Positions 31,724-60,816 of a DNA stretch of 64,000 bases are shown piece by piece (position 1 is the stretch's first letter; the number at the start of each line of letters is the position of its first letter). The DNA lies in IMG/VR virus record IMGVR_UViG_3300049217_000071, positions 186,001-250,000 of that record; one strand, 5' to 3'. Both the position numbers and the translations under genes were made by a program. Under the pieces are notes generated by a model that was not told the DNA's origin, made no database searches, and saw only the letters and a program-made list of their open reading frames with translations.

Positions 31724-32629
31724 ATGAAAACTTGCTCTATGTGCGGAAAACCCAAAGATATCGGCTGCTTTGTCAAACAGGCAAAGTCAGCCGATGGTCT
31801 TTTTCCGTGGTGTGAAGATTGTCGTCGACAATACCGTAAAGATAAGTATAACGAAGATTTACAGAAGAGTCGCGATTACACCAATGATTGGAGAGCCTCT
31901 CGCATTCAATGGTTTCAAGAGCTAAAGTCTAACACGCCCTGTGTAGATTGTGTTCAGATATACGAACCATTCTGTATGGACTATGATCACGTCCCAGGTC
32001 GAGGTGAAAAAATCAAGAGTGTTAGTCGTATGGTAATAGATAACACATCAAAGGAAGTTATCCTTGCCGAGATAGAGAAGTGTGATCTTGTGTGCTTGTT
32101 GTGCCACAATAAACGCACATATAGTCGTTTTGATGAAGTTTTAGGAAGCGACAGAAAATATCCGCCACATGTGCAACGAAACATTGATATGATCAATAAG
32201 TTCAAGACGCATCTGTGCGTCATCTGTGGTAATCAATATGAGCATTATAATATGCAGATTGATCACATTGATTCGATGACTAAGCTGTATGATGTATGTC
32301 AGTTGAAAAGTTGTAAAGTGGAAAAACTATTGATCGAGCTAGCAAAATGCCAAGTTCTATGCGCCCTGTGTCATCGTAGAAAATCCATTGTTGAGCAGCA
32401 GGACGACAAATACTCGGCACCCCGCCATACCCCACCCAAGCGTCAGCAGTTGTTCTACGATCCTATCACCAACACAAAAGAATGTGGACTATGTCATCAA
32501 ATCAAAGATGGATCATTATTTCGCGCAAACAGTAAAACTGTGTCAGGGTTGGATACATATTGTAAGGAGTGTTTCAATGAGTATCGAAGAGAAAAACGAG
32601 CAGGAGAGGCACATACAAAAACTTCGTAA
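31724..32629 (+). CDS. Tandem double-HNH homing endonuclease
   Basis: Two CxxC..DH..E..KC..C..CH units flanked by Cys4 ribbons. Confidence 0.8.
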   Translation: MKTCSMCGKPKDIGCFVKQAKSADGLFPWCEDCRRQYRKDKYNEDLQKSRDYTNDWRASRIQWFQELKSNTPCVDCVQIYEPFCMDYDHVPGRGEKIKSVSRMVIDNTSKEVILAEIEKCDLVCLLCHNKRTYSRFDEVLGSDRKYPPHVQRNIDMINKFKTHLCVICGNQYEHYNMQIDHIDSMTKLYDVCQLKSCKVEKLLIELAKCQVLCALCHRRKSIVEQQDDKYSAPRHTPPKRQQLFYDPITNTKECGLCHQIKDGSLFRANSKTVSGLDTYCKECFNEYRREKRAGEAHTKTS

Positions 32630-36832: not shown

Positions 36833-37544
36833 AGATGAAATCATTACCAAGTTAGTCTTGGATTTCCCAGCCAAAGATATTCACGAGTGGTTAAAAGATA
36901 AATACACCAATGTAAATGAAGCTAAACTAGTTATTCCAGAAAAGAACATCAAGACATTCAGAGATAATTACCTCGACATCTACAATATGATTCGAGATGA
37001 TATTGCCAAGAGTAAGCAGGCCTTGGCCACCAGCACAGAAGTGGCCTTGGAGTTATCTGTTCAGAATAATCCAACTTATAAGAGTAAGATGTTGGAACTG
37101 GCTGATAAAGAAATCGATGTACGTAAAACGGTGGCCCGTATGTGTGCTGCCCTGGAAACCCGTTTTGGTCAACTTTTGGATAGGATTCAAGAGGACCCAA
37201 GCGATATCAACACTAAAGTAGAGCGCGTCACCATTGAATATGGTGAATTGCTCGGCGGCCTTCTAGAGAAATACTATAAGTTCACTGAGTCCCCAGCCGA
37301 CCAGATTATTCAGCACAATGTCACCGTCCAAATGGTGGATCAGCATATTTCCGTATTTCATGATGTAGTCCGCGAGGTTCTATCTCAAATGGATTTGGAA
37401 AGCTCTATGCTATTTATGGAGCTTTTCAGTGAGAAAATGGCCAAACTAAAAGCCACTCTTCCTGAACCAGGTCTCAATACAGATATGAAGGTTGCGGAAG
37501 CCAAACTACTCAACGAAACCATCAATCAAAAGCTGAACAAATAA
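36789..37544 (+). CDS. Hypothetical helical protein
   Basis: 251-aa ORF coupled to the next gene. Confidence 0.55.
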   Translation: MNKNALKKILEHPDKDEIITKLVLDFPAKDIHEWLKDKYTNVNEAKLVIPEKNIKTFRDNYLDIYNMIRDDIAKSKQALATSTEVALELSVQNNPTYKSKMLELADKEIDVRKTVARMCAALETRFGQLLDRIQEDPSDINTKVERVTIEYGELLGGLLEKYYKFTESPADQIIQHNVTVQMVDQHISVFHDVVREVLSQMDLESSMLFMELFSEKMAKLKATLPEPGLNTDMKVAEAKLLNETINQKLNK

Positions 37545-39451
37545 TGCCGCACGATCCTTCCTACCCAGTTTCTTCTCCTAAAGTGCAGGAAGCGATCCGT
37601 CCATATTCTGATGAAGAACTATCTACCGATAAAGATATGGATGAAAAAATCGAGAAGCTAATGAAGTTTTTCGATGAGCACGGTATCACTTATGATAAGT
37701 TTGTTTCTCCGTCCAGAGATTTTATGGACACCAGTAAGAAAGCCTATCCTAACTATGAGCATTTTGCGTATGTGCCAGGTCAGCATGACACACAGAAATG
37801 GTTGATGGCCGTTAAGGACATGTATTACAAGAAGAAGAGGGGCGTACCCTTTGAAGAGGCTGTTCGCCAGACAACGGGTGGTTGGAAGAAAATGGAGACT
37901 TATGACTTCCTAAATTGGCTCAAGTTTTACGAAGAGGGTGCACACATGAAATACAAATTCGCACAGGTATGGTATGAAAATGGACAGCCAGGATACTTTC
38001 TGCACATCAAGCAGGACACCCAGCAGGTCGCCACACCAACTGTGGATGTGGATGCCGCCCGTGAAGAAGTAAGTCACCAAGAAGAGAAAAGGCAGATCAT
38101 TGAGAAGCAACGAGCCAAGATTATTGGTCGTTTGGATTCCGCTGAAAAGCTACTTCGCTCTCCTGATGGACAAATTTTTGCCGGTCCCGAATTAGAAGGT
38201 TTGATGGAGGCCATTTATGGTCTCAAGAAAAAGGTTCAGTTAGTCAATAAGCTTAGCGTTTCTACTCGTCTCTATGAAGATATGATTGTTCGTGAGTCCA
38301 ACGTTTTGAGACGTAAAGGTTTTGTCAAAGCCGCTAGCTTGCTTTACTCTGTAGCTCAAACCCCCGGTGCGGATGCTGTACTCGGTCCCGATGGACAAGC
38401 TACCGGTGGTGCCGTACCTCCTCCAGCTCCTCCGCCCGATCCCTCTGGTGCAGGCCAATCAGGAACTATGGTAGGCTTACCAGCTACTACCCCAGGTACT
38501 AACCCAAATACTCCAGTGGATGGCGCGGCCCAAACAGAAAGCCAACCATCTGCCGCAGGTCTTCAGCCGCCAGCCGGCCCTCCTGGGACCGCTCAGTCTA
38601 GTCCTGCCATTATGCCTCAAGAAGATCCGCAGCCAGCCGGTATCAAAGAGTTCATGGAGAATATGAACGATGGCAATAAAACCGATGCAGATGATTTGGA
38701 AGTGACTGACAATTTGGAAGTGGATGATCCAGAGCAACAACTCATGGTATCAGAAGCTCAAGCTATGCCCACCGCCCCAGGTGGACCACCTCCAGCTACT
38801 TTGGAAGATGTTCCTATGACGGACACTCCTCCACCAGCACCACTCAATCCGGTAGATCCAATTCCTGCTATTCCTGAAGCTAAACCTGTCGCAGCTCCAG
38901 TAGCTCCAGCTGGTGAAGAACCTTTGGAAGTAACAGAAGACGATATCCCACAAGACACTCCATCAGGTGGTAGCAGTGGTAGTTTAGAGAGCAAGCTAGA
39001 CAGCACATTTGAGAGCGTCACGATGGAAGAAATTGTGGCCGAGCTAAAGGACATTTCCCAATACTACAAGGTTAGAGAAATGCCAAGACGTCTTGCCCGC
39101 CTAGACATGATGTTTGATAGCAAGGGTATTTCTGCTTACTTCCCTTCTTTAGCAGAAGCTCAAAGAAGCGCCCTAGAAGCTAACAACTATATCTCTACCC
39201 GTATCGATGATATCTTATCTAAGGTCAGCGGTTCCCTTGCTTCCAAGGATGTAGGCGCCAAACTCAAGGAAGATCAAGATAAAGAGAAGGCTCGTAAGCA
39301 GATGAGAAAAGATCAAGAGAATGCCGAACTAGAAGGTGGCGGGGCTGCCCCTGCCGCTGGTAAAGAAACTCCACAAGTAGAGATGGGTGAGTTAGCTCCT
39401 CCAGCCGGTGCTCCCGCTAAAGCTCCGGTAGCTCCACGACCGTTAGGCTAA
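37544..39451 (+). CDS. Putative head protein with Pro/Ala/Gly-rich linkers
   Basis: KKAY, KFAQ, SVAQ, SEAQ motifs; low complexity. Confidence 0.55.
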   Translation: MPHDPSYPVSSPKVQEAIRPYSDEELSTDKDMDEKIEKLMKFFDEHGITYDKFVSPSRDFMDTSKKAYPNYEHFAYVPGQHDTQKWLMAVKDMYYKKKRGVPFEEAVRQTTGGWKKMETYDFLNWLKFYEEGAHMKYKFAQVWYENGQPGYFLHIKQDTQQVATPTVDVDAAREEVSHQEEKRQIIEKQRAKIIGRLDSAEKLLRSPDGQIFAGPELEGLMEAIYGLKKKVQLVNKLSVSTRLYEDMIVRESNVLRRKGFVKAASLLYSVAQTPGADAVLGPDGQATGGAVPPPAPPPDPSGAGQSGTMVGLPATTPGTNPNTPVDGAAQTESQPSAAGLQPPAGPPGTAQSSPAIMPQEDPQPAGIKEFMENMNDGNKTDADDLEVTDNLEVDDPEQQLMVSEAQAMPTAPGGPPPATLEDVPMTDTPPPAPLNPVDPIPAIPEAKPVAAPVAPAGEEPLEVTEDDIPQDTPSGGSSGSLESKLDSTFESVTMEEIVAELKDISQYYKVREMPRRLARLDMMFDSKGISAYFPSLAEAQRSALEANNYISTRIDDILSKVSGSLASKDVGAKLKEDQDKEKARKQMRKDQENAELEGGGAAPAAGKETPQVEMGELAPPAGAPAKAPVAPRPLG

Positions 39452-39456
39452 AATGA

Positions 39457-40230
39457 ATGAAACTCCGAGAGCTACTAGATATGATGCAAAAAACTGCTGT
39501 CGAAATTGGTGCCTCTGCTCCAATGATTTGCGGTGGTACGCCCAGAGATAAGTTTCTTGGACGTTTGGAAAACATTGCAGATATCGATGTAACGACCGGT
39601 GATAAGACGGTAGACTATCTTTCCCAAGAGTTTGCTATCAAGTTGCGTAAGCAATTCAACATTACCAGAAAAACGATGGAAGACGGTCATAGCACCATTT
39701 TTGTGGGTAGCTTGAAGGTGGATTTCTCATCCAATTTCATGGTGCCCAATATCGACACCATCCTGGGTCAGATGAACATCCCTAACCCTTCCGATATGCA
39801 AAGAGAGATGTATAGTCGAGACTTCACTTGCAACGCTCTATTGCTGTCGCTAGATCTCAAGAAGATTACCGATCCTACGGGGCACGGCTTTCAAGACATT
39901 CGAGACCGTAAAATCAAGACTTGCCTATCGCCTGAGATTACTCTTACCTCTAATAGAAACCGTGTCGTCAGGGCCATCTATTTGGCTTGCAAGTTGGATT
40001 TCGATATCGATGAGGCTATTATCGATTACGTGCGAAAGAACCCTCAGACAGTCAAGATATCCACTACTAAATCAATGTCAGATAAGCTAACAGAAGCTTT
40101 TACCAGAGATGCCGATAAAGCTTCTAAACTGATTACTAGAATGGGTTTATGGAATTACATTCCTATCAATGAAAAGATGTATCCATACTATCAAGCACAA
40201 CTGAAAGGTAATCTCAATGTCGGTCAATAA
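39457..40230 (+). CDS. Class II tRNA nucleotidyltransferase/poly(A) polymerase family protein
   Basis: GGTPRD..DIDV, RDFTCNAL, DPTG.GFQD, RVVRA. Confidence 0.85.
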   Translation: MKLRELLDMMQKTAVEIGASAPMICGGTPRDKFLGRLENIADIDVTTGDKTVDYLSQEFAIKLRKQFNITRKTMEDGHSTIFVGSLKVDFSSNFMVPNIDTILGQMNIPNPSDMQREMYSRDFTCNALLLSLDLKKITDPTGHGFQDIRDRKIKTCLSPEITLTSNRNRVVRAIYLACKLDFDIDEAIIDYVRKNPQTVKISTTKSMSDKLTEAFTRDADKASKLITRMGLWNYIPINEKMYPYYQAQLKGNLNVGQ

Positions 40231-41551
40231 GAAGGCTTATTTTCAAGGTGGGGGCGGAGTCAACGAACCTACGCCAGGCAAAAAGAAATACAAGTCAGAT
40301 CCGGCCCTGGTGGTGCAGCCCCGTTTTAAAGAGCCATTTTATCGCAACTACGATTTGTATACGATTCCAGGAATGGAAGAGGTGGGTCCTGGCACCGGTT
40401 GGCATGGCCTGCAAAATTATAAAAGCGTTCAGAACTTCTTGAAAGATCGAAGAAAGCGCCTGCAACCCCGTTATGTAGCCGATGATTCTTGGCAAATTGA
40501 TTCAGGGGAAAGAGTCAAGAAGAACCCAGACAAAAAAGCCAGAATGACTATTCTAGAAAGAATCATCAAACAAGCGGTAGCCTGTCAAGATTCGGATATT
40601 GAGTATTCTGATGGAAGAGACGCTTGGATTTGCGGCAATTGCTTACACATGGGACCAAATGCCGGAGGTCCAACTCCATCTGTCAAGGAGCTACACGCTG
40701 GTAAAAATCATAACTCGGATAAGATAGATTGGCGAAATGGCCACTATGAAAATGACCCTAAGTATCTGGCTCTCAAAGAAGAGAGGCGCCACAGAGATGA
40801 AAACGATGGTCCCAATTTCGATTATGGTCATGGGGCTTATGACGCCATGAACAAAGGCGAAAAGATGAAGACTATCACCGATTTCAAGCGCACTAGCCCA
40901 GGTGCCCTAATGGGTGTCAAAGCTGATCATATGATGGCACCTAAAGAACACGGCACCAGTATTTACAACTGGAAGAATAGTCCTTATCAAGGAACTCCGG
41001 GTGCCAAGAACAAGAGAAAGAAAGATACCAACAATATCGATTTCCCCATTGATGAAGAAGTAAATCATCAAGGTGAAATGGTGTATCCCGGAGAAGAGAA
41101 CTATCAAGCTCCTAAGCACTTAGTTGGTCCCGCAGGACCTCCTGGTGATGTCAGCACCTATCCTGGTGATGTAGGGCCAACCGACCAATCTTCCTACATC
41201 AACTCCGCTCAGATAGCCGGAGAGCATTCTTATCTTCCCAAGTCAGATGAAGAGTCTAGATCCGATGAGGCTTTGGATTTCGGAAGAGATTATACAGACG
41301 AAACTCTCTTAGGCCGCCCTAATGGTGGGGGTGAGTCTTTGTCTGATGAGATGCAAGATGACGATAAAGAAATGGATTTGGATGCGCTAGAGGCTAAGTA
41401 TCTAGGATCCACAGAAATTGGATTATTTGGCTTGCCAGATGGGGTAGATCCCGAAGGCCATGATGCCGATCAAACCGAACAAATAGAACAGCCTTTTACT
41501 GGCACATCTGATATTGGCACTCAAATGTATGAAGACAAATGGAACATCTAA
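40217..41551 (+). CDS. Putative head protein with N-terminal YFQGGGGVNEPTP module
   Basis: Module shared with the protease-scaffold. Confidence 0.6.
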   Translation: MSVNKKAYFQGGGGVNEPTPGKKKYKSDPALVVQPRFKEPFYRNYDLYTIPGMEEVGPGTGWHGLQNYKSVQNFLKDRRKRLQPRYVADDSWQIDSGERVKKNPDKKARMTILERIIKQAVACQDSDIEYSDGRDAWICGNCLHMGPNAGGPTPSVKELHAGKNHNSDKIDWRNGHYENDPKYLALKEERRHRDENDGPNFDYGHGAYDAMNKGEKMKTITDFKRTSPGALMGVKADHMMAPKEHGTSIYNWKNSPYQGTPGAKNKRKKDTNNIDFPIDEEVNHQGEMVYPGEENYQAPKHLVGPAGPPGDVSTYPGDVGPTDQSSYINSAQIAGEHSYLPKSDEESRSDEALDFGRDYTDETLLGRPNGGGESLSDEMQDDDKEMDLDALEAKYLGSTEIGLFGLPDGVDPEGHDADQTEQIEQPFTGTSDIGTQMYEDKWNI

Positions 41552-42574: not shown

Positions 42575-43237
42575 ATGGCTAAACAACCAAGACAACAGCC
42601 GGTCATTCACCGTCAGTCTGAAGAAGAGGTCAGTGAAGACCATTGGCTGCGTCAGTTCGAGCAGAAGCTACAAAAGACCAGCGTGCAACCACGTGGTAAT
42701 GAGTCTTTGTTCGAGCAGATCAATACCATTATGAATGGCAAATCTAAGTATCCTTCCGTGCAAGCTGCCGTGGATGATATGATGCACCGTAGTGGTTTGT
42801 CTGGTTATCTAGACAATGTCAAGACTTCCGAAACAGAAGCTCCTACCCAGCCGAAAAAAGTGGCCCAGCAAGTGGATCGAGCTAGACTGCAAGAAGTCAA
42901 AACTAATCCGAAGACACCTAAGGTCATCGAAGAGAAGCCAAGCATTCTACACACTCTGGAAAACATCATTCGAGACTCCAAGGGTAATCTTTCTGTGCCA
43001 ACCATCATCAGCCGTCTTCACGCTTTGCATGCCTCTGATGTGACGGATGAATCGGCTTGGGACGATGATAAACTCATTCGTTTGGTTAGCTATTTCAACA
43101 TCAAGGCCAAGAAAGACAACCCAGCTAACTTCGAGAATTTCGATAACCTGGGCAAGCGAGATCATTCTACCGCCGACTCCGATATTGATCCATCCAACAC
43201 AGACGCTTTCAATGTGTTGATGCCTGCCAAACTTTGA
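42575..43237 (+). CDS. Putative head-region protein
   Basis: GAGG SD; KKVAQ. Confidence 0.55.
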   Translation: MAKQPRQQPVIHRQSEEEVSEDHWLRQFEQKLQKTSVQPRGNESLFEQINTIMNGKSKYPSVQAAVDDMMHRSGLSGYLDNVKTSETEAPTQPKKVAQQVDRARLQEVKTNPKTPKVIEEKPSILHTLENIIRDSKGNLSVPTIISRLHALHASDVTDESAWDDDKLIRLVSYFNIKAKKDNPANFENFDNLGKRDHSTADSDIDPSNTDAFNVLMPAKL

Positions 43238-43923
43238 GGTTTTTCTGGTGGATATTTAGCGAGAGATATCTTGCTACAATTACAGTTGAAACATAAAGCC
43301 TGCAATCCTAGGTTTTGTGGGAATTCGTGATTTATTAACCAACGATAAAAGGCTGATCCGGTTTTGTATCCATATTTACGACGTTGTTCTGCTCCGTCAT
43401 TATTTTTATGGTCGATGGTTAGTCGCTCGATTCTATCTTCTGAACATTCTGCACAACAACCACCATATATTGCAATTACTATCTTCTTTTTCTGTAGTGC
43501 ACGTTTATCTTTGTAAACGACATTTTTACTACAATTGCAGTTGTAGCATAGAACTTGGTATACATCTCTATTTATCAAATTGTTATACAAGTGATCAATT
43601 AGGTTTCCTGTCATTTCTCTACGATGGGCATTCCCACCACCATTGATGTGATCGATAGTGAGTTTGGTATAATCATCTTCTCCACAACCAGCGCATTGAT
43701 TGCCATAAAAAAGAATAACCGCACTACGTCTCATACGTTGTCTGTCAAGTTGTTTTTTACCGTAGTTAGGATCACTTTTATGGTATGTTCTGCCGTACTC
43801 TCGGAAACAGGGCGTGCATAGATAATTGCTGCGTTTGACCAGATATTTGAGCCAGTTTTCCCTGGTTAGCTTTACATTGCATTTGATACATCTTTTGAGA
43901 CTACGATTTTTTTGTGAGTGCAT
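43162..43923 (-). CDS. Antisense tandem double-HNH homing endonuclease
   Basis: Two YG..CxxC..LTIDH..G..QxLCxNCN units. Confidence 0.85.
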   Translation of the reverse strand: MHSQKNRSLKRCIKCNVKLTRENWLKYLVKRSNYLCTPCFREYGRTYHKSDPNYGKKQLDRQRMRRSAVILFYGNQCAGCGEDDYTKLTIDHINGGGNAHRREMTGNLIDHLYNNLINRDVYQVLCYNCNCSKNVVYKDKRALQKKKIVIAIYGGCCAECSEDRIERLTIDHKNNDGAEQRRKYGYKTGSAFYRWLINHEFPQNLGLQALCFNCNCSKISLAKYPPEKPQSLAGINTLKASVLDGSISESAVE

Positions 43924-43950: not shown

Positions 43951-45828
43951 ATGCCCACTCTAGAAATCGAAAATAAAGACATGTTCAATAAGCTGAAGAA
44001 ACAGCTAATGATGTACGATCCTGTTTATTTCGCAGAGGAGAATCTAACCTTAGAAGGTAAGCCCTTCACCTTACACGGCAACGGATATAAGCCCTTCAGC
44101 GAAATCTACCGATACGTAGGAGTCAAAGCTTTAGAGCCAGATTCTAAACCGATTCTCATCGTGAAAGGCCGTCAGGTTGGCGCTACTACTATGGCTAGTG
44201 CCCTAGAGATGTATTTTATGGGCTGTGGGCTTTTTGGCAACGGTATTCGTCCACCTATCCGTGTCATTCACGCTTTTCCACAGTTAGAACTAGCTGCCGC
44301 TTATTCTAAGACCAAGCTCAATCAGATTATTGCTACTGCCAAAATCCCAGAAGGCACCAATACAACCAAAGGTTCCCGCCCTAAGTCTTGTATGCAACTT
44401 CTCTTGGATCAATCAGCAGCTACCAACGATTCCTTGCACTTCAAGCAGTTTGCAGGCGGCAACCATTTATGGGTAGAGTCTACTGGTATTGATGCTGACA
44501 GAATTATGGGTCGTACTGCCGACATCATCTTTTTTGACGAAGTGCAGAAGACGACTGCCCAGGCTATGGGAAATGCTCTCAAGATTTTGACCAACGCCGC
44601 CTATGGTAGACCTACTAAAGGCGTGCAAGTTTACTTCGGAACCCCGAGACGTAAAGGCTCTGATTTTCACGGTATGTGGGAGAAGTCTTCTCAACAGTAT
44701 TACTACCTAGGATGTGAGAAATGCGAAAAGCACTTTCCATTTTACACTCCAGGCTCTGATGACTGGGAAAAGATTTGGATCCATGGTAAGGTAGTCAAGT
44801 GCCCATTGTGCGGCCACGAGCAAGATAAACTAGAAGCTCAAGAACGTGGCAAGTGGGTTGGTCTGAAAGATGCCAGCGAGTCCGATTTCATTGGGTTTCA
44901 CATCAATCAACTCTACATGCCAAGATTTACCCGTGAAGACATAGAAAATGAAAAGCCGGGCAAGCATCCTATCAACACGGAGAGAGTTTATCAGAACGAA
45001 GTTTTGGGAGAGTTCTTTCAAGGAGATTCCAGTCCTATTACTCCAGAAGAGATTCGTTTGCTATGCAGAGATGAGGGTAGAAAATTCAGTGCTCGTATTG
45101 TGCCCACCAAGGGATTGACGCAGCAACTAGCTATTCTGGGCATCGACTATGGTGCTCGTTCCGATTTGGAGCAGTTAGCTCAGCCCGATAAAATCAAAGC
45201 TACCGGGCAATCTTACAGTACGGCCGTAGTTCTATTGACTAAGGGCCCAGGATTACTTTCTATCGAGATGGCTCTCAAGTTCAAGCGCAATGACCCGGCC
45301 AGTAAGAAAGGTATCATCGATCAATTGATGAGGCAATACAACATCAGTTTGGCGGTAGGAGATATTGGTTATTCCAATGACTTCTCTTATGACTTGCACC
45401 AAACTTATGGAGACAAATATCTCGTCTCTCGTGCTCATAACAGAGTCAATGATCACGTCAAGGTCAATGCAGATGCCTTTCCTAAAGAGATCATCTTTGA
45501 GAGAGATTTCTATATCGGTGAACTGTATGAACAAATGAAGAAGGGTATGATCAGATTTCCTTATGGTGATTATGAGAAGATAGCTTGGTTAATTGATCAT
45601 TGTTGCAGTATGGAACTCAAGCCCTCTATTTCTAGATACGGAGATCCTAGCATCCATTATGTCAAGGGCGGCACCCCAAACGACGGTTTCATGGCGTTAT
45701 TGAACGCCTACATTGCCTATAAGTTTTTGGTTAGTCGAGGCTTTACCAATAACAATCCACTCTTGCAAACCACTAAAAATGCCAATAAACCATTGGTTAT
45801 CTCTGGGTATGTGCCCCGAAGAATATGA
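43951..45828 (+). CDS. terL: Terminase large subunit (lambda GpA-like)
   Basis: KGRQVGATT, FFDE, GTP, CxxC..CxxC, GFHINQLY, NEVLGE, GIDYG. Confidence 0.9.
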   Translation: MPTLEIENKDMFNKLKKQLMMYDPVYFAEENLTLEGKPFTLHGNGYKPFSEIYRYVGVKALEPDSKPILIVKGRQVGATTMASALEMYFMGCGLFGNGIRPPIRVIHAFPQLELAAAYSKTKLNQIIATAKIPEGTNTTKGSRPKSCMQLLLDQSAATNDSLHFKQFAGGNHLWVESTGIDADRIMGRTADIIFFDEVQKTTAQAMGNALKILTNAAYGRPTKGVQVYFGTPRRKGSDFHGMWEKSSQQYYYLGCEKCEKHFPFYTPGSDDWEKIWIHGKVVKCPLCGHEQDKLEAQERGKWVGLKDASESDFIGFHINQLYMPRFTREDIENEKPGKHPINTERVYQNEVLGEFFQGDSSPITPEEIRLLCRDEGRKFSARIVPTKGLTQQLAILGIDYGARSDLEQLAQPDKIKATGQSYSTAVVLLTKGPGLLSIEMALKFKRNDPASKKGIIDQLMRQYNISLAVGDIGYSNDFSYDLHQTYGDKYLVSRAHNRVNDHVKVNADAFPKEIIFERDFYIGELYEQMKKGMIRFPYGDYEKIAWLIDHCCSMELKPSISRYGDPSIHYVKGGTPNDGFMALLNAYIAYKFLVSRGFTNNNPLLQTTKNANKPLVISGYVPRRI

Positions 45829-53148: not shown

Positions 53149-56100
53149 ATGACCATAATCAAACTGGGCGAAGCACACGAAATCAAACTAGAGTCGGCGG
53201 AGTCCTGTATTCCAGAAGTGAGCCCCGAGGTTCTAGAGAACTTTAGGAAGTTTGCTCAAAACCTCAAGAAGATCGCCCCTAAGGCTGAAGACTTCTTGTA
53301 TTTCTCTGCCGTTATGATGCATGCTGCCGAGGCCTCTTGTCTCAATGACGATGGCACTCCTAAACTAAATGTTCGAGGTGAAGCTGTCCAAGTAGGCTGG
53401 GATACCAGTAATGGAACTTGGAAATGGACTACCAATGATCCTAGCATTAAGCCTTATAAGAATTCTAATGGGGATATCTTCCCAGAATTAGAGTTAATCA
53501 AAGCTTACAAGAAATGGAAGCACAAGCCCCTCTGCGTGGATCATAAATCGAATTCGGTTGATCACGTCAGGGGCTTTATTGTTGATACTCACTACGATCG
53601 TAATCTCAAAAGAGTGATCGCATTATGTGCCTTAGATAAGGCTGGGTTTCCTCAACTAGCTCGTCAAATTTCTACTGGCGTTTCTAACTGCGTATCTATG
53701 GGTACGGCAGTGGGTCGTGCCATTTGCTATGATTGTCAAAGAGTCGCCCGCACGGAAGCCGATTTCTGCACTCATATGAAGAACAAGTCTTGCTACGGTG
53801 AAATAAACGTAGACCTCAATCCTATTGAACTTTCGATTGTGGTCAACGGTGCCGATCCTAGAGCCAGCATCAAGCATATTATCGCCGCAGCAAATACTCT
53901 TAATACCTATGTGGAGAATAAACAAAAGGAATTAGCTAAGTTAGCTGATCTTAACTTCAATGCTTCATTAAGTGTTGATGACCCACAAGGACAAGAAGGT
54001 TTGAGCCATACTCAGTTTCAAGTCAATGGCAATAATCTAGAAAAGTTCAAAGCTGACCTAGATCAAGCCTTTGCTAAACTATCTGAAATAGCCGGTACCG
54101 TAAAAAATACTGAAAAAGATACTAATCTTTCTGCATCTAATCAGTCGTCGGGTTCAATTGCGATGGATGAAGGCGCCCCGACTGATTCTGGATTGGCTCT
54201 CCAAACTCCGCAGACTGCAAGGTTTGCATCAGCAAGTGTAGAGGCGGAATCTCTAGCTGAACTTCACGAAATAACAGCCACTATTGAAGCAAAGCTAAAT
54301 CAAATGAAGCAGGGCTTAGAAAAACTAGCAGCTACTTCTACAAAAACACAAGAGGAAAATATGTCTGGATCAGAAAAACTAAAAGCACAAGGTTATTTCC
54401 AGGGCGCTGGTGGTGTTAACGAGCCTACTCCAGGCCAAGTTAAGTACCCTAAGGACCCACTTAATGAGCAACTTCGTGAACACGAAGACAAGCAGATGGT
54501 GGGCGAGCCTCCTTTCCCAGAAGTGGGACCAGTGGACGGCATGCATCCTTCTCCAAGTTCGGCTGATCCTTCCGACGAGTTAGCTCGTAAGAAGATGTTA
54601 GCTCGTGCTGATCTAGAAGAGCGCGCTATGAAGCGTAATGCCATCGTTCAGTTGGCAAAAGAAGCTCTAGAGAGCAAGTCTTACTTTCAAGGTGGCGGTG
54701 GCGTCAATGAGCCAACCCCAAACAAGCCAAAGTATCCAAAGGACAAGCTCAACGAAGAGCTACGTGAATACGAAGACAAGCAAATGGTTGGTCAACCACC
54801 ATTCCCAGGCGTAGGTCCTGTCGACGGTCTTCACCCATCCCCATTCTCCGCAGATCCAAAGGATGAATTGAAGCGTAAGAAAATGCTCGCCAGAGCTTCC
54901 TTGAGAGCCAGATTCGTCAAGGCTGCCAATGGTGACGGTACCCAGAACAAGTCCAAGAGTGCTTGGGAAGTTTTCCTAGGCGACAAGCTCCTATTGACTG
55001 CTTCTGTCGATGAACTATCCGGTGGACACACCGACATGTTGTATGACAGCATTGCTACCAAGGAATTTGGTGGTAAATTGATCGAAAAGGTCAAGGTCAA
55101 TGGTGCTCCAGCCGTAGCCCAACTAATCAAGAAGGCTCAGCCTATGCCTCCAGCCCCTCCGGGTGGTGATGCAGGTGCCCCTCCAGAAGCTCCAGACCCA
55201 GATGCTGGTCCTCCAGTAGAAGATGCTGGTAAGTCTGGTGATCCAAAGCAACACGCTATGGAATTGGCTAAGACAGTTAGAGACACTGCCTCCGATTTGA
55301 TGGAAGCTGTTCGCGCCCTTACCGGCGAGAGCGCTGAAATGGGTGGTGAAGGTTCTAGCGCACCAGAAGGTGGCGTTGGTGGACCAGCAGGTGGACCAGC
55401 CGCGATGGCTGATGACTCCTCAGGTTCCGGCTCTGCTACAGGCAAGACCTCTACCGCTGAAGGTTTTAGTACTGCAACTCTCAATAACTTGAGAAAGGAA
55501 CTCAACAGTTCTCTAACTCTCGCTATGAAAGAAGCTGTCGCTGAACTCAACGATCACGGTCAAGAATTGGACATGATTGTCAGCATGTACGACAAGGGTG
55601 CTGTTACCGATCAAAACTCTGACTTCGTCAACAACGTCGTAACCGACGCCTTGAATGAAGCCAAGACTACCGTGGCTGACGGATTCAAGCTAATGACCGC
55701 TTTCGTCAAGTATGCCCGTGGTACTCAAGCTATTGTCAAGCGTGCTGAGATCGAAACCGAACTTCAAGCACTTGCAACTGAAGGAGATACTATGAGCGAT
55801 ACAAAAGATAGTCACTCCGCAGATGGCGGTGACTTAATGGGACTAATCAACGACACCAACGCAGATCTAGACGCTGTCAAGATGATGGTTGATGATAATG
55901 ACCACGAAGGTGGCATGGAAGGACTAGATGACTTAGATGACTTAGGTGATCTAGGACTCGATGGTCTATCCGAAGGTTTAGTTGATGATAACGCTGGTGT
56001 GATGGTTGATACCCCAGCCAAAGCCGCAGAGGTTACCAAAATGAATCCAGATGCTAGTGTAAAAGTTGCCTCCTTTGATACCAAAGAGGGCCGCGCAGCT

Positions 56101-56838
56101 CTAAGAGCCAAGTTGGCCGCTGATGCTACCGGCAAGGAAGAGAATGGAGAAATCCAGGATGCTTCCAAGATTAAGTTCAGTGATATGTTGGATCAAGCCG
56201 ACAAGTTGACTGATGGTCAAACTCAATTGGATGTTAAGCCATCCGATAGTCTTGGATTGGTAGAAACTCTACCAGAAGTTAATAAGGCTATGTTGGAACT
56301 TGCTAAGGCTCCACCAAACGTCCGTAAGGAAGCTGCTGCAATCCAGAAACTCGTTTCTGAAGGCAAGCTAGATCCAAAGGATGTGGACGCTCTAGTCGCA
56401 GAAGGTCTAGACAAGGAAGCTGTCTCTTACTGGAAGAAATACTACGGTGAAGTTGATGGTGGCGGTGAATTTGCCAGTGAATTGGTGAAGGAACATGTCA
56501 AGTCCGCAATGGCCGAAGAACTAAACCAGTTCAGAGTCAAGCTAGCTCGTGCCTACGAATTAGCTTATGATATGGCTGACCGTGGACTATGTCATCACGA
56601 AAGACCAGCAATTAGCGCTCAAGTGGATGAAATCATGAAGTTCAATGATGAATCCTTTGACTCTCTCAAGAGAGTAGTTGCTCGTCACACTCCATTACTT
56701 CACAAGGAAGCTGGACGTATCCCACAAGTTGGTTTGAGAGGTGATCAAGATGTCACCCCATCTACCCAAGCAGTGGTTGAAGAGGATGCATATGCACAGC
56801 TATCTTCAATGTTCGGCACCAAACGCGGTGTGTTCTAA
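53149..56838 (+). CDS. Prohead maturation protease (HK97/assemblin clan)-scaffold fusion
   Basis: PLCVDH..VRGFIVD, VSMG, ELSIVVNGADP.A in the N-terminal ~260 aa; long helical/acidic remainder. Confidence 0.8.
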   Translation: MTIIKLGEAHEIKLESAESCIPEVSPEVLENFRKFAQNLKKIAPKAEDFLYFSAVMMHAAEASCLNDDGTPKLNVRGEAVQVGWDTSNGTWKWTTNDPSIKPYKNSNGDIFPELELIKAYKKWKHKPLCVDHKSNSVDHVRGFIVDTHYDRNLKRVIALCALDKAGFPQLARQISTGVSNCVSMGTAVGRAICYDCQRVARTEADFCTHMKNKSCYGEINVDLNPIELSIVVNGADPRASIKHIIAAANTLNTYVENKQKELAKLADLNFNASLSVDDPQGQEGLSHTQFQVNGNNLEKFKADLDQAFAKLSEIAGTVKNTEKDTNLSASNQSSGSIAMDEGAPTDSGLALQTPQTARFASASVEAESLAELHEITATIEAKLNQMKQGLEKLAATSTKTQEENMSGSEKLKAQGYFQGAGGVNEPTPGQVKYPKDPLNEQLREHEDKQMVGEPPFPEVGPVDGMHPSPSSADPSDELARKKMLARADLEERAMKRNAIVQLAKEALESKSYFQGGGGVNEPTPNKPKYPKDKLNEELREYEDKQMVGQPPFPGVGPVDGLHPSPFSADPKDELKRKKMLARASLRARFVKAANGDGTQNKSKSAWEVFLGDKLLLTASVDELSGGHTDMLYDSIATKEFGGKLIEKVKVNGAPAVAQLIKKAQPMPPAPPGGDAGAPPEAPDPDAGPPVEDAGKSGDPKQHAMELAKTVRDTASDLMEAVRALTGESAEMGGEGSSAPEGGVGGPAGGPAAMADDSSGSGSATGKTSTAEGFSTATLNNLRKELNSSLTLAMKEAVAELNDHGQELDMIVSMYDKGAVTDQNSDFVNNVVTDALNEAKTTVADGFKLMTAFVKYARGTQAIVKRAEIETELQALATEGDTMSDTKDSHSADGGDLMGLINDTNADLDAVKMMVDDNDHEGGMEGLDDLDDLGDLGLDGLSEGLVDDNAGVMVDTPAKAAEVTKMNPDASVKVASFDTKEGRAALRAKLAADATGKEENGEIQDASKIKFSDMLDQADKLTDGQTQLDVKPSDSLGLVETLPEVNKAMLELAKAPPNVRKEAAAIQKLVSEGKLDPKDVDALVAEGLDKEAVSYWKKYYGEVDGGGEFASELVKEHVKSAMAEELNQFRVKLARAYELAYDMADRGLCHHERPAISAQVDEIMKFNDESFDSLKRVVARHTPLLHKEAGRIPQVGLRGDQDVTPSTQAVVEEDAYAQLSSMFGTKRGVF
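54394..54897 (+). repeat. Two copies (288-nt period) of a ~72-aa module YFQG.GGVNEPTP...RKKMLARA
   Basis: Seen in the translation. Confidence 0.9.
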
Positions 56839-56868: not shown

Positions 56869-57651
56869 ATGAAAAACCAAAGCGTATCAGATTTTGTCGC
56901 TGCAACTATGGATGCAGTGCTAAACAGCCCAGAACACAAAGCCTTGTTCGGCTCCCAATACAAGTATGCACAGTCCAAGGATGCTATGTGCGCCAAGCAC
57001 GGCAAAATGGACTCTTGCGCAGCCGATGATCAAGATGCCAAGAAGAAGGACTCTAGCTCTGCCTCTGACATGAACGATGCCAGAAAAGTAAAGAAGTATG
57101 ACTCTTCTGATGCAGATGACCAGGATGCTAAGAAGAAAGACTCTTCCGATGCTGATGATCAAGATGCTAAGAAGATGCCACCATGGCTAAAGAAGAGGGA
57201 CGAATCTTCTGCTGACGATCAAGATGCCAAGAAGAAAGATTCTTCTGACGCAGATGATCAAGACGCCAAGAAGAAAGACTCTTCCGATGCTGACGATCAA
57301 GATGCCAAAAAGAAGGACTCTTCTGACGCTGATGATGACGACCTAGAGGCTTCTGCCGCTTTTGATATTGCTATCGATAGTTTGCTCACCGCCTCCGCCG
57401 CTCTTGATTCCGTGGGTCTCGGTAAGGGCTCTTCAGTTATCTTGAAGGTAGCTTCTTTGGTTGTTGAAGCCAAGAAGAAGGAAAAGGATTCCAAGAAAAA
57501 GAAGAAGGAAGACTCTAAGAAGAGTGATTCCAAGAAGTCTTCTACCAAGGATTCTCAATCCGCTAAGGACAAGAAGTCTCCTCCAAAGAAAGACTCCAAG
57601 AAGGATGAGAAGAAATCCTCTTCCAAGCCTTCCTCTTCTTCCAAGAAGTAA
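56869..57651 (+). CDS. Low-complexity D/K/S-rich putative internal head protein
   Basis: GAGGA SD; DSSDADDQDAKKK repeats. Confidence 0.65.
   Translation: MKNQSVSDFVAATMDAVLNSPEHKALFGSQYKYAQSKDAMCAKHGKMDSCAADDQDAKKKDSSSASDMNDARKVKKYDSSDADDQDAKKKDSSDADDQDAKKMPPWLKKRDESSADDQDAKKKDSSDADDQDAKKKDSSDADDQDAKKKDSSDADDDDLEASAAFDIAIDSLLTASAALDSVGLGKGSSVILKVASLVVEAKKKEKDSKKKKKEDSKKSDSKKSSTKDSQSAKDKKSPPKKDSKKDEKKSSSKPSSSSKK
57025..57340 (+). repeat. Tandem ~39-nt coding repeats (DSSDADDQDAKKK, about 7 copies)
   Basis: Units diverge at synonymous positions. Confidence 0.9.
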
Positions 57652-57664
57652 ATCGTAATAGTTG

Positions 57665-57734
57665 CACCCTCAGAAGGAATTGAACCTCCGCTCCCATAGT
57701 TTAGCAGACCTGGGCAGGAACCACCAATGAGGGT
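57665..57734 (-). tRNA. Non-canonical tRNA-Ser(GCU)-like RNA, 70 nt, with vestigial D-arm, short variable loop and no encoded CCA
   Basis: ACCCUCA/UGAGGGU acceptor stem plus G73; GGAGG-UUCAAUU-CCUUC T-arm; CU-GCU-AA loop. Confidence 0.7.
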
Positions 57735-57777: not shown

Positions 57778-58338
57778 ATGAATACAACCATCTGTTCAAT
57801 ATATAAAATTGTCAATAATATGGACGGCAATGTATATATTGGGCAAACATGGATTCCTGTTCAAGCTAGATTTAGGAGGCACAAGTATGCTTCCAGTAAT
57901 TGCATCAAGCTTGCAAGAGCCATAAAAAAGTACGGAGAAGATAACTTCAAAGTCGAACTAATTACTGTCTGTGGCACCCAAGAGGTTGCAGATTATTTGG
58001 AAGCCTATTTTATCAACAAATTTGACTCTATCAGGAGTGGATACAACATACTGGCTGGTGGTAAGACAAGTAGCAGAAGGGGAGCAAAACACTCCCAAGA
58101 AACTAAGGATAAACTGTCAAAATTAGCCACAGGGCGTAGGCACTCGATCGAGACAAAAGAAACTCTGTCCGCACTAAGAAAAGGCATTCCACTCTCGATC
58201 GAACATAGATCCAAGTTATCAGAGGCTAAGAAAGGCAAAAAGTTCACCGAAGAGCATAAATCTAAATTACTTGGAAATCATAAGGGCATGACGTGGAATA
58301 TAGTAGACGGCAAAAGAGTGTGGATGGAGAAACGATGA
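57778..58338 (+). CDS. GIY-YIG homing endonuclease with NUMOD3 repeats
   Basis: SIYKI..VYIGQT, GYN, HSQETKDKLS repeats. Confidence 0.9.
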   Translation: MNTTICSIYKIVNNMDGNVYIGQTWIPVQARFRRHKYASSNCIKLARAIKKYGEDNFKVELITVCGTQEVADYLEAYFINKFDSIRSGYNILAGGKTSSRRGAKHSQETKDKLSKLATGRRHSIETKETLSALRKGIPLSIEHRSKLSEAKKGKKFTEEHKSKLLGNHKGMTWNIVDGKRVWMEKR

Positions 58339-60096: not shown

Positions 60097-60816
60097 ATGG
60101 AAACGCACTACCTATACAAAATCACGGATACGCTAAATAACAAGGTTTACATCGGTCAAACGGCTGATAACAAAAAGAGATGGTCGCAACACAAGGCTTA
60201 CGCCAAACATCCTGAAAAAACGGGCCAATACATCCATCGTGCGATAGCAAAATATGGTGTGGAGAATTTTATATTCGAAATCATTGCTGCCTGCAAGACA
60301 CAAGAAGATACTGATGAAACTGAGAGTGTTCTAATTGAGCAATATGATAGTCGCAATAAAGAGCACGGATATAATCTGATGATTGGTGGCAGCCATGGAG
60401 GACATTCAGAAGAAACGAAGAAGAAACAATCCGATGCTACTTTCAAGCAAATTGCCGAGAAAGGTCATCCCGCCCAAGGCACCAAACGAACTCCCGAACA
60501 AATCCAACATCTTGTGCAAGCTCGTCAAGAAAACCCGGTGGAATATACACCAGAAATCAGACAACGAATGTCAGAAGCACATATAGGACATACGGAGTCA
60601 GAAGAAACCAAGCAAAAGAAATCGGAAGCTGCTACCTCAGATTGGGAGAAACGCAATGCCATCCGAGAGGCAACGGGAGAATTGAAATGCAACGCCCCTG
60701 GTTGTAATATCTCTGGCAGCAAGCAAGCCTACAAAATGATCAATGGTATCAGCTATTGCAACAAGCACGGACTGCGTCTGTGGCGCTATGGCAGACTAGA
60801 TCGCATAAACCCCTGA
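60097..60816 (+). CDS. GIY-YIG homing endonuclease with NUMOD3-like repeats and C-terminal Cys/His motif
   Basis: YLYKIT..VYIGQT..RW..H, GYNL. Confidence 0.9.
   Translation: METHYLYKITDTLNNKVYIGQTADNKKRWSQHKAYAKHPEKTGQYIHRAIAKYGVENFIFEIIAACKTQEDTDETESVLIEQYDSRNKEHGYNLMIGGSHGGHSEETKKKQSDATFKQIAEKGHPAQGTKRTPEQIQHLVQARQENPVEYTPEIRQRMSEAHIGHTESEETKQKKSEAATSDWEKRNAIREATGELKCNAPGCNISGSKQAYKMINGISYCNKHGLRLWRYGRLDRINP

Follow-up and report, generated by a model that had tools for sequence, protein, structure and literature searches.

The gene considered here encodes a short class II nucleotidyltransferase (P0001) in the IMG/VR virus record IMGVR_UViG_3300049217_000071 (G000; 268,344 bp, estimated to be 62% complete), of which we analyzed bases 186001-250000 (the window, 64,000 nucleotides, nt). 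The textbook example of polymerization without a nucleic-acid template is the class II CCA-adding enzyme, in which the side chains of an EDxxR motif choose the nucleotides. In P0001, a protein of 257 amino acids (aa), this motif is changed. The gene and its motifs are located as follows in the window, with n giving the number of diverse family members over which conservation was scored.

39457..40230, + strand: class II nucleotidyltransferase P0001, 257 aa, head and neck
39526..39594, + strand: motif A, residues 24-46, GG..RD...D42-I-D44-V (GGTPRD...DIDV), metal-binding carboxylates; G26, G27, R30, D42 and D44 invariant (n=112)
39721..39723, + strand: D89, likely third catalytic carboxylate, within KVDFSSNF; invariant (n=112)
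39814..39837, + strand: motif B, SRDFTCNA, residues 120-127; R121 and D122 invariant, S120, F123 and N126 each in at least 90% (n=112)
39871..39924, + strand: motif C, residues 139-156, DPTGHGFQDIRDRKIKTC; D139 and D147 nearly invariant; aligned to motif C of solved enzymes
39949..39972, + strand: altered motif D, SNRNRVVR, residues 165-172, replacing EDxxRxxR; placed by alignments, with a family census and tree
40069..40101, + strand: motif E-like helix, KSMSDKLTEAF, residues 205-215; aligned to motif E of a psychrophilic CCA enzyme

The short nucleotidyltransferase and its motif D

P0001 matches the PolyA_pol head domain (Pfam PF01743; 43.9 bits, gathering cut-off 23) as well as phrog_2244 and phrog_24229, both of which are labelled tRNA nucleotidyltransferase. 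Its N-terminus, MKLRELL, is common to all homologs. The catalytic DxD (DIDV) and the RDFTxNA that a preliminary description of this DNA had reported as intact are present in motifs A and B, and D89 is likely the third catalytic carboxylate, a role suggested by the Pol-beta fold. Motif B aligns to RRDLTINA of a canonical CCA enzyme encoded in the same genome, with the first Arg of the canonical RRD replaced by Ser. Motif C reads DPTGHGFQDIRDRKIKT, and in the motif E-like helix K205, K210, L211, A214 and F215 are invariant among close kin.

At motif D, P0001 has S165-N166-R-N168-R169. The same placement, with S-N under E-D and R169 under the template Arg, comes from HMMER alignments to solved CCA enzymes and from BLASTP against the canonical paralog of this genome. 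The SNRNR previously described at this position is thus upheld, and a scan of the whole protein found no EDxxR or DDxxR elsewhere in P0001. When scored against NCBIfam models, P0001 falls below the cut-offs of the CCA-enzyme equivalogs NF009814 (48.7 versus 290 bits) and TIGR02692 (43.6 versus 438.8), of the A-adding model (27.5 versus 1440) and of the poly(A) polymerase I (PcnB) models TIGR01942 (36.2 versus 305.65) and NF008634 (21.3 versus 702).

A word search recovered 681 homologs, the best 120 of which are 68-80% identical to P0001, are 242-273 aa long (most 245-260) and are encoded on contigs of up to 488 kb. An exhaustive HMMER search gave 2570 matches to the family, 196 of them below 1e-10, and numbers of this size show that the feature is not a product of chance. 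Residues G26, G27, R30, D42, D44, D89, R121, D122 and R172 are invariant over the 112 diverse members, and some members that keep all catalytic and nucleoside triphosphate (NTP)-binding residues are only 25-30% identical. Given the invariance of the catalytic residues, the family is under selection as an enzyme, and on the sequence evidence P0001 is almost certainly an active class II transferase. Databases label the family 'tRNA nucleotidyltransferase/poly(A) polymerase' on the basis of homology, and our literature searches found no functional study of the short form. One 7704-aa protein with four PolyA_pol domains and Cpn10 (P0247) appears to be a merged gene call and was set aside. Among 185,579 species genomes there was one sizeable match to P0001, 47% identical (locus L102, on the 383,427-bp contig JAIXLO010000160.1). 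This contig, which is binned in a Chitinophagales metagenome-assembled genome, probably derives from a jumbo phage, and the bin gives a weak hint of a Bacteroidota host.

The residues of motif D vary across the family in a structured way. Among 108 representatives the template Arg is kept in 105 and Glu occupies the first position in only 4, while the Asp position holds D in 56, N in 28 and S in 9. Twenty close homologs all keep N166, N168 and R169. In a quick maximum-likelihood IQ-TREE tree (rooted at the midpoint and limited to rows of at least 225 aa that cover at least 180 profile positions), P0001 falls in a derived clade of 35 rows (approximate likelihood-ratio test support 91), 23 of which have N at the Asp position, mostly as xNxNR. 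Asp is retained by the basal groups and in 27 of the 28 rows of another clade with good support, mostly as DDPxR. Based on the invariance in close kin and on this distribution, the aligned sequences identify the xNxNR template as a conserved trait of a sub-clade, not as decay.

The AlphaFold2 model of P0001, built from a 112-sequence alignment, is confident (pLDDT 96.6, pTM 0.91) and has a fold of the class II CCA/poly(A) polymerase type, in agreement with the preliminary description. Foldseek against the PDB returned class II CCA-adding enzymes, A-adding enzymes or poly(A) polymerases for all of the top 45 matches (probability 1.00). The alignments span about 240 columns of target chains that are 342-517 residues long, and P0001 is therefore head and neck only; the model stops after the neck and about two helices, with no tRNA-binding body or tail. 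The closest ESM Atlas cluster (template-modelling score, TM, 0.93) has 169 members and is 100% viral, and BFVD contains only full-length viral enzymes or weak matches to short proteins.

Comparison with solved enzymes places the differences in the template and in the missing C-terminal parts. Bacterial class II CCA enzymes (Geobacillus stearothermophilus 1MIV, Thermotoga maritima 3H37, Planococcus 6IBP) have the head and neck fold in common with P0001 and share with it the motif A DxD, the motif B RDxxxNA, motifs C and E, and the template Arg. They are about 370-450 aa long, whereas P0001, at 257 aa, lacks body and tail, has S-N for ED and Ser for the first Arg of RRD, and carries a short helix-containing segment where the bacterial enzymes have a flexible loop. 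The best structural match is the Aquifex aeolicus A-adding enzyme (1VFG, 4WBY-4WC6; E 8.7e-11, TM by query 0.65), which, unlike P0001, retains EDxxR and the tRNA-binding body and tail. Escherichia coli poly(A) polymerase I (PAP I; PcnB, 3AQK-3AQN) is of the same family and core fold, but it keeps EDxxR (PMC2532741) and has a C-terminal RNA-binding region. The short 'tRNA nucleotidyltransferase' of small phages (phrog_24229; Friunavirus, about 184 aa) is, like the P0001 family, truncated, class II-like and annotated by homology. In contrast to P0001, these Friunavirus genes lie among DNA-metabolism genes and are dispensable (PMC8092837), and the structural match is weak (TM 0.43).

The overlapping partner gene and the gene neighbourhood

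The genes of the window run on the + strand, and those that bear on the setting of P0001 are:

37544..39451, + strand: upstream gene, 635 aa, with a long Pro/Ala-rich low-complexity region; ends 5 nt before the P0001 start, in an operon-like run
40217..40230, + strand: overlap of the P0001 stop and the partner start, 14 nt, +1 frame, from the coordinates
40217..41551, + strand: partner protein, 444 aa; basic conserved N-terminal ~120 aa (isoelectric point 9.8), acidic disordered low-complexity region, conserved C-terminus
43951..45828, + strand: terminase large subunit (TerL); phrog_675 1.8e-54, Pfam GpA_ATPase 53.7 bits
45911..47824, + strand: portal protein; phrog_16240 3.4e-49

The 257-aa length and the overlap with the next gene, both stated in the preliminary description, are confirmed by the open reading frames (ORFs), one at 39457..40230 and the next from 40217. 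In most of 78 IMG/VR loci the enzyme and partner genes share 4-14 nt or form a single in-frame fusion (about 22 of the 78); in a few, some 550-580 nt separate the two or no partner is detected. The pair flips repeatedly between genes overlapping in the +1 frame and in-frame fusion across the clade (L004-L083). We saw no obvious slippery sequence at the window junction (40217-40230). Overlapping genes suggest that the translation of P0001 and its partner is coupled, and the two proteins probably work together.

C-terminal extensions of the enzyme occur in about 30 of the 108 representatives and fall into two main families. One is the window's type of partner, fused to the enzyme in P0121, P0122 and P0123. 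The other is M15-peptidase-like and has an additional domain, which is a phage tail lysozyme in P0208, Peptidase_M15_3 in P0224 and the HAD domain of RNA-repair proteins (HAD_SAK) in P0239. P0208 and P0224 pass the Peptidase_M15_3 and Phage_lysozyme2 cut-offs, with synteny as in the window, and one enzyme fusion contains a PcfJ-like domain. The window's own partner is a separate, disordered protein in which Pfam recognises no domain. Near its C-terminus (41400-41551), the end ...YEDKWNI and the preceding LDFGRDY...GLPDGVD are conserved, and this part could be a targeting or docking peptide.

Structure prediction gave a confident fold for the enzyme only. The ESM Atlas model of the partner has a pLDDT of 0.38, and feature and structure searches with it gave nothing usable. 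In an AlphaFold2 model of a natural 569-aa fusion, the enzyme part is confident and the partner is mostly below pLDDT 50-60, with two helices at 60-74; this low-confidence part ruled out the partner as a stand-in for the missing body and tail. A complex prediction for P0001 with partner residues 1-130 scored 0.00 with the partner fold itself uncertain, and so has no bearing on binding either way.

The gene order in the window begins with RecA, DnaJ, a DnaG-type primase, a sigma-region-4/helix-turn-helix protein and an HNH endonuclease. Six genes of no recognisable function follow, then P0001, three more unknowns, terminase, portal, an SLT-domain protein and a 1229-aa protein. P0001 had been described as lying among head genes, and this holds insofar as TerL and portal are 3.7 and 5.7 kb downstream. 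It does not extend to the immediate neighbours, which have no recognisable function: they match nothing in PHROGs or Pfam, PDB sequence searches with four neighbours were empty, and an ESM Atlas feature search of a 538-aa upstream protein gave nothing usable. The 635-aa gene directly upstream has no family match either, and a counterpart of 501-663 aa is found at the same place in relatives. Throughout the clade the enzyme gene lies about 4 kb upstream of terminase and portal. The gene order around P0001 is kept in a 77%-identical relative. In a 35%-identical relative (414-kb contig) it reads primase, sigma-like protein, five to six unknowns, enzyme, overlapping partner, a few unknowns, terminase and portal.

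Several other genes of this region were characterized. Residues 105-213 of the 1229-aa protein (53149-56838) match a head-maturation-protease PHROG, giving it a protease-like N-terminus, with the other 1000 residues unassigned. The 260-aa protein at 56869-57651 has a long Lys/Ser/Asp-rich low-complexity C-terminal tail and no family match, and may be a DNA-associated internal protein. A single sizeable ORF of this block is on the minus strand (43162-43923). It lies just upstream of the terminase gene and has no family match; a minus-strand gene occupies the matching place in one relative (L003 13823-14383) and is not found in a distant one. Three free-standing homing endonuclease genes are present (HNH at 31724-32629, GIY-YIG at 57778-58338 and 60097-60816), and the HNH slot is taken by a GIY-YIG gene in a relative.

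tRNA genes, the canonical CCA enzyme and the element at 57665

The canonical enzyme, the element at 57665 and the adjacent homing endonuclease gene are located as follows:

genome 256072-257313 (locus L001 727..1968), - strand, outside the window: canonical class II CCA enzyme, 413 aa; GGCVRD...DWD, RRDLTINA, EDGLR
57665..57734, - strand: degenerate tRNA-like sequence ('CCA-less RNA'); RF00005 22.5 bits, E 0.023
57778..58338, + strand: GIY-YIG homing endonuclease; phrog_314 1.4e-34; the element at 57665 lies directly upstream

The canonical 413-aa enzyme passes the NCBIfam CCA equivalog cut-off (308.8 bits versus 290), and P0001 is 22% identical to it over head and neck (BLASTP). Unlike P0001, it is full length, has EDGLR and is patchy in relatives: the P0001 gene is present in all five essentially complete relatives (433-481 kb) and the canonical enzyme in two of the five. 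From their sequences we conclude that P0001 belongs to the core genes of a large clade of uncultivated jumbo phages. Because a full-length EDxxR enzyme is encoded in the same genome, and given the equivalog scores, P0001 is very probably a divergent second transferase, distinct from the ordinary CCA enzyme of the phage. Metagenome runs from moss contain the DNA and may be its source; runs from lake water, soil and sediment match it in part, and none of the matching runs was an RNA run.

ARAGORN identified 52 tRNAs and one transfer-messenger RNA (tmRNA) in the genome, and CCA is encoded in 51 of the 52 tRNA genes. The sole CCA-less tRNA gene (G000:C1:163289-163362, +) is well formed (RF00005 60 bits) and has a CUA anticodon (amber suppressor). 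A CCA-less CUA tRNA also occurs in relatives G001, G003, G006 and G007, nearly all of whose other tRNA genes encode CCA, and a suppressor dependent on CCA addition could serve as a regulatory switch. The genome has two CUA-anticodon tRNAs, and TAG is by far the rarest stop among + strand ORFs of at least 100 aa over the whole genome (n=298; TAG 17, TAA 160, TGA 121). The standard code gives about 80% coding density, and so we saw no evidence of recoding in the window. ARAGORN also reported a four-base-anticodon (taat) tRNA and the tmRNA, with tag peptide ADEFAFAEAA, at G000:C1:33569-33647 and 157740-158091.

The preliminary description had linked P0001 to the RNA at 57665, proposing that the enzyme may mature or repair it and that the two could form a tRNA-mimic and tailing-enzyme system. 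In the element a perfectly paired acceptor-like stem of 7 bp and a T-arm-like hairpin are followed by CAA, features that would suit such a mimic; its D and anticodon arms are poor, and it has no CCA. Its RF00005 score of 22.5 is below the gathering threshold of 29, ARAGORN finds no tRNA in the window and the Rfam gathering scan was empty. It is antisense to all surrounding genes, 17.4 kb from the enzyme gene and beside a homing endonuclease gene, and in four complete relatives, all of which have the enzyme, we found only chance-level short DNA matches. With no co-occurrence in any of the four, the proposed link and the two-component system are largely refuted, and this model is now barely tenable. 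In our reading the element is what remains of a tRNA, in association with a mobile endonuclease. The CCA-less CUA tRNA is a better candidate for a 'CCA-less RNA'.

A possible role for P0001 and the alternatives

We propose that P0001 is a transferase acting on RNA 3' ends, that its nucleotide choice is re-tuned or relaxed, and that it forms a unit with its partner and is possibly carried in the virion; taken as a whole, we regard this proposal as evenly poised between right and wrong. The enzyme would extend RNA molecules at the 3' end, and its most plausible substrates would be tRNA acceptor ends or host transcripts. Its nucleotide choice would depart from, or be looser than, strict C/A templating, since Asn stands in place of the template Asp and the Arg no longer has the Glu that would position it. 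That specificity may be altered had already been suggested, fairly in our judgement, as this is a class II enzyme with an intact catalytic core and a motif D that is both changed and conserved. We lean slightly towards an altered or relaxed NTP choice. A selection with the human CCA enzyme (A-repair or CCA-repair) varied all three template positions, with Asn and Ser among the residues on offer; no substitute for the template Asp or Arg came through, and the template Glu tolerated only Asp or Gly (PMC11784652). Judged from this literature, xNxNR is unlikely to support textbook CCA synthesis. Template-residue swaps re-programme the NTP choice of poly(A) polymerase and CCA enzymes, with GTP specificity attainable (PMC2532741).

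Delivery in the virion is a more tentative part of the proposal. The enzyme and its partner would be made late, perhaps packaged, and injected with the DNA, so that they would act ahead of any phage gene expression. The idea of packaging, already raised in the preliminary description, is backed indirectly by the conserved place near terminase and portal and by the fusions to disordered, M15-peptidase and tail-lysozyme parts. Phage T4 Alt, the N4 virion RNA polymerase and the polyvalent proteins resemble the fused forms of relatives in combining an enzyme with lysozyme, peptidase and disordered parts near portal and terminase, and Iyer et al. (2017) (PMC5512222) argue that polyvalent proteins bearing lysozyme or DD-peptidase are virion-delivered. 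A term search of the text of that paper found no class II CCA/PAP-type domain. Unlike polyvalent proteins, the window's enzyme and partner are separate overlapping genes. A stronger version, in which the pair would be a virion-carried 'pilot' class II RNA nucleotidyltransferase with a re-programmed base template, threaded in by the disordered or cell-wall-cutting partner and editing RNA 3' ends ahead of phage gene expression, we consider doubtful.

Several observations weigh against the proposal as a whole. In principle the amino group of C or A could still donate a hydrogen bond to Asn, and C/A specificity might thereby survive. Many relatives have DDPxR and one is fused to a HAD RNA-repair domain, which fits plain repair of tRNA ends. 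CCA-less tRNA genes are most numerous in two complete relatives without the canonical enzyme, G002 (451,956 bp, with terminal repeats; 16 of 32) and G003 (8 of 56), as would fit a role in completing CCA; most of those in G002 end in the discriminator and C, then T or A. The trend between presence of the canonical enzyme and encoded CCA is opposite to the naive expectation, and it does not discriminate between the hypotheses. The label 'structural module' for the surroundings of P0001 rests on proximity to the terminase, portal and SLT-domain protein, and no close cultured relative was found by megablast and tblastn against 50,697 phage records.

Much of this would suit the main rival reading, a minimal tRNA CCA-repair or A-adding enzyme, with Asn166 serving as the template Asp and the paralog redundant, that mends the ends of host tRNAs and of the phage's 52. 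The class II fold and motifs A-C and E are intact, all relatives have large tRNA sets, the short enzyme is universal where the canonical one is absent from three of the five complete relatives, and basal and 'DDPRR' relatives retain the template Asp. To this may be added the HAD_SAK fusion and the reading of jumbo-phage CCA enzymes as tRNA-repair factors (PMC7824862). However, P0001 has no body or tail and scores far below every CCA, PAP and A-adding equivalog cut-off, and the template Asp was irreplaceable in the human-enzyme selection. Its location and the cell-wall hydrolase fusions are unlike those of tRNA-repair genes, and the tRNA genes of this genome encode CCA alongside a full enzyme; on balance a repair enzyme seems to us rather unlikely. 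An effector that tails host RNA like a poly(A)/poly(N) polymerase, marking host transcripts for decay or blocking host tRNA 3' ends, would aid a takeover of translation with the phage's own tRNA set, and P0001 and bacterial poly(A) polymerase I share a family. Untemplated tailing would agree with the loss of residues that secure template fidelity, since mutation of the template Arg in E. coli poly(A) polymerase leads to random addition of A, C and U (PMC2532741), and the entry-type fusions suggest action at the start of infection. Yet P0001 keeps the template Arg, the main specificity residue of PAP, and has no PAP I-like RNA-binding C-terminal region, and phage and host tRNAs have the same CCA ends, which together make a tailing effector improbable. 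That P0001 is a non-enzymatic domain, a structural or assembly module of a virion protein, might be suggested by its place near the packaging genes and by fusion partners of structural type, but catalytic and NTP-binding residues are invariant even in members that are 25-30% identical, and we consider this highly improbable.

The persistence across a clade of a changed EDxxR template in a minimal scaffold provides a natural test of how the template encodes specificity. This is a core gene located beside the packaging genes of phages with 50-66 tRNAs and repeatedly fused to entry-type domains, and it is relevant to the ways in which jumbo phages protect translation or take it over. If P0001 is delivered in the virion, the short list of phage-injected enzymes (ADP-ribosyltransferases, RNA polymerases) would extend to RNA 3'-end editing. 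If the pair does act as an injected pilot enzyme, it would represent a new class of injected phage effector, conserved over a globally distributed clade of jumbo phages.

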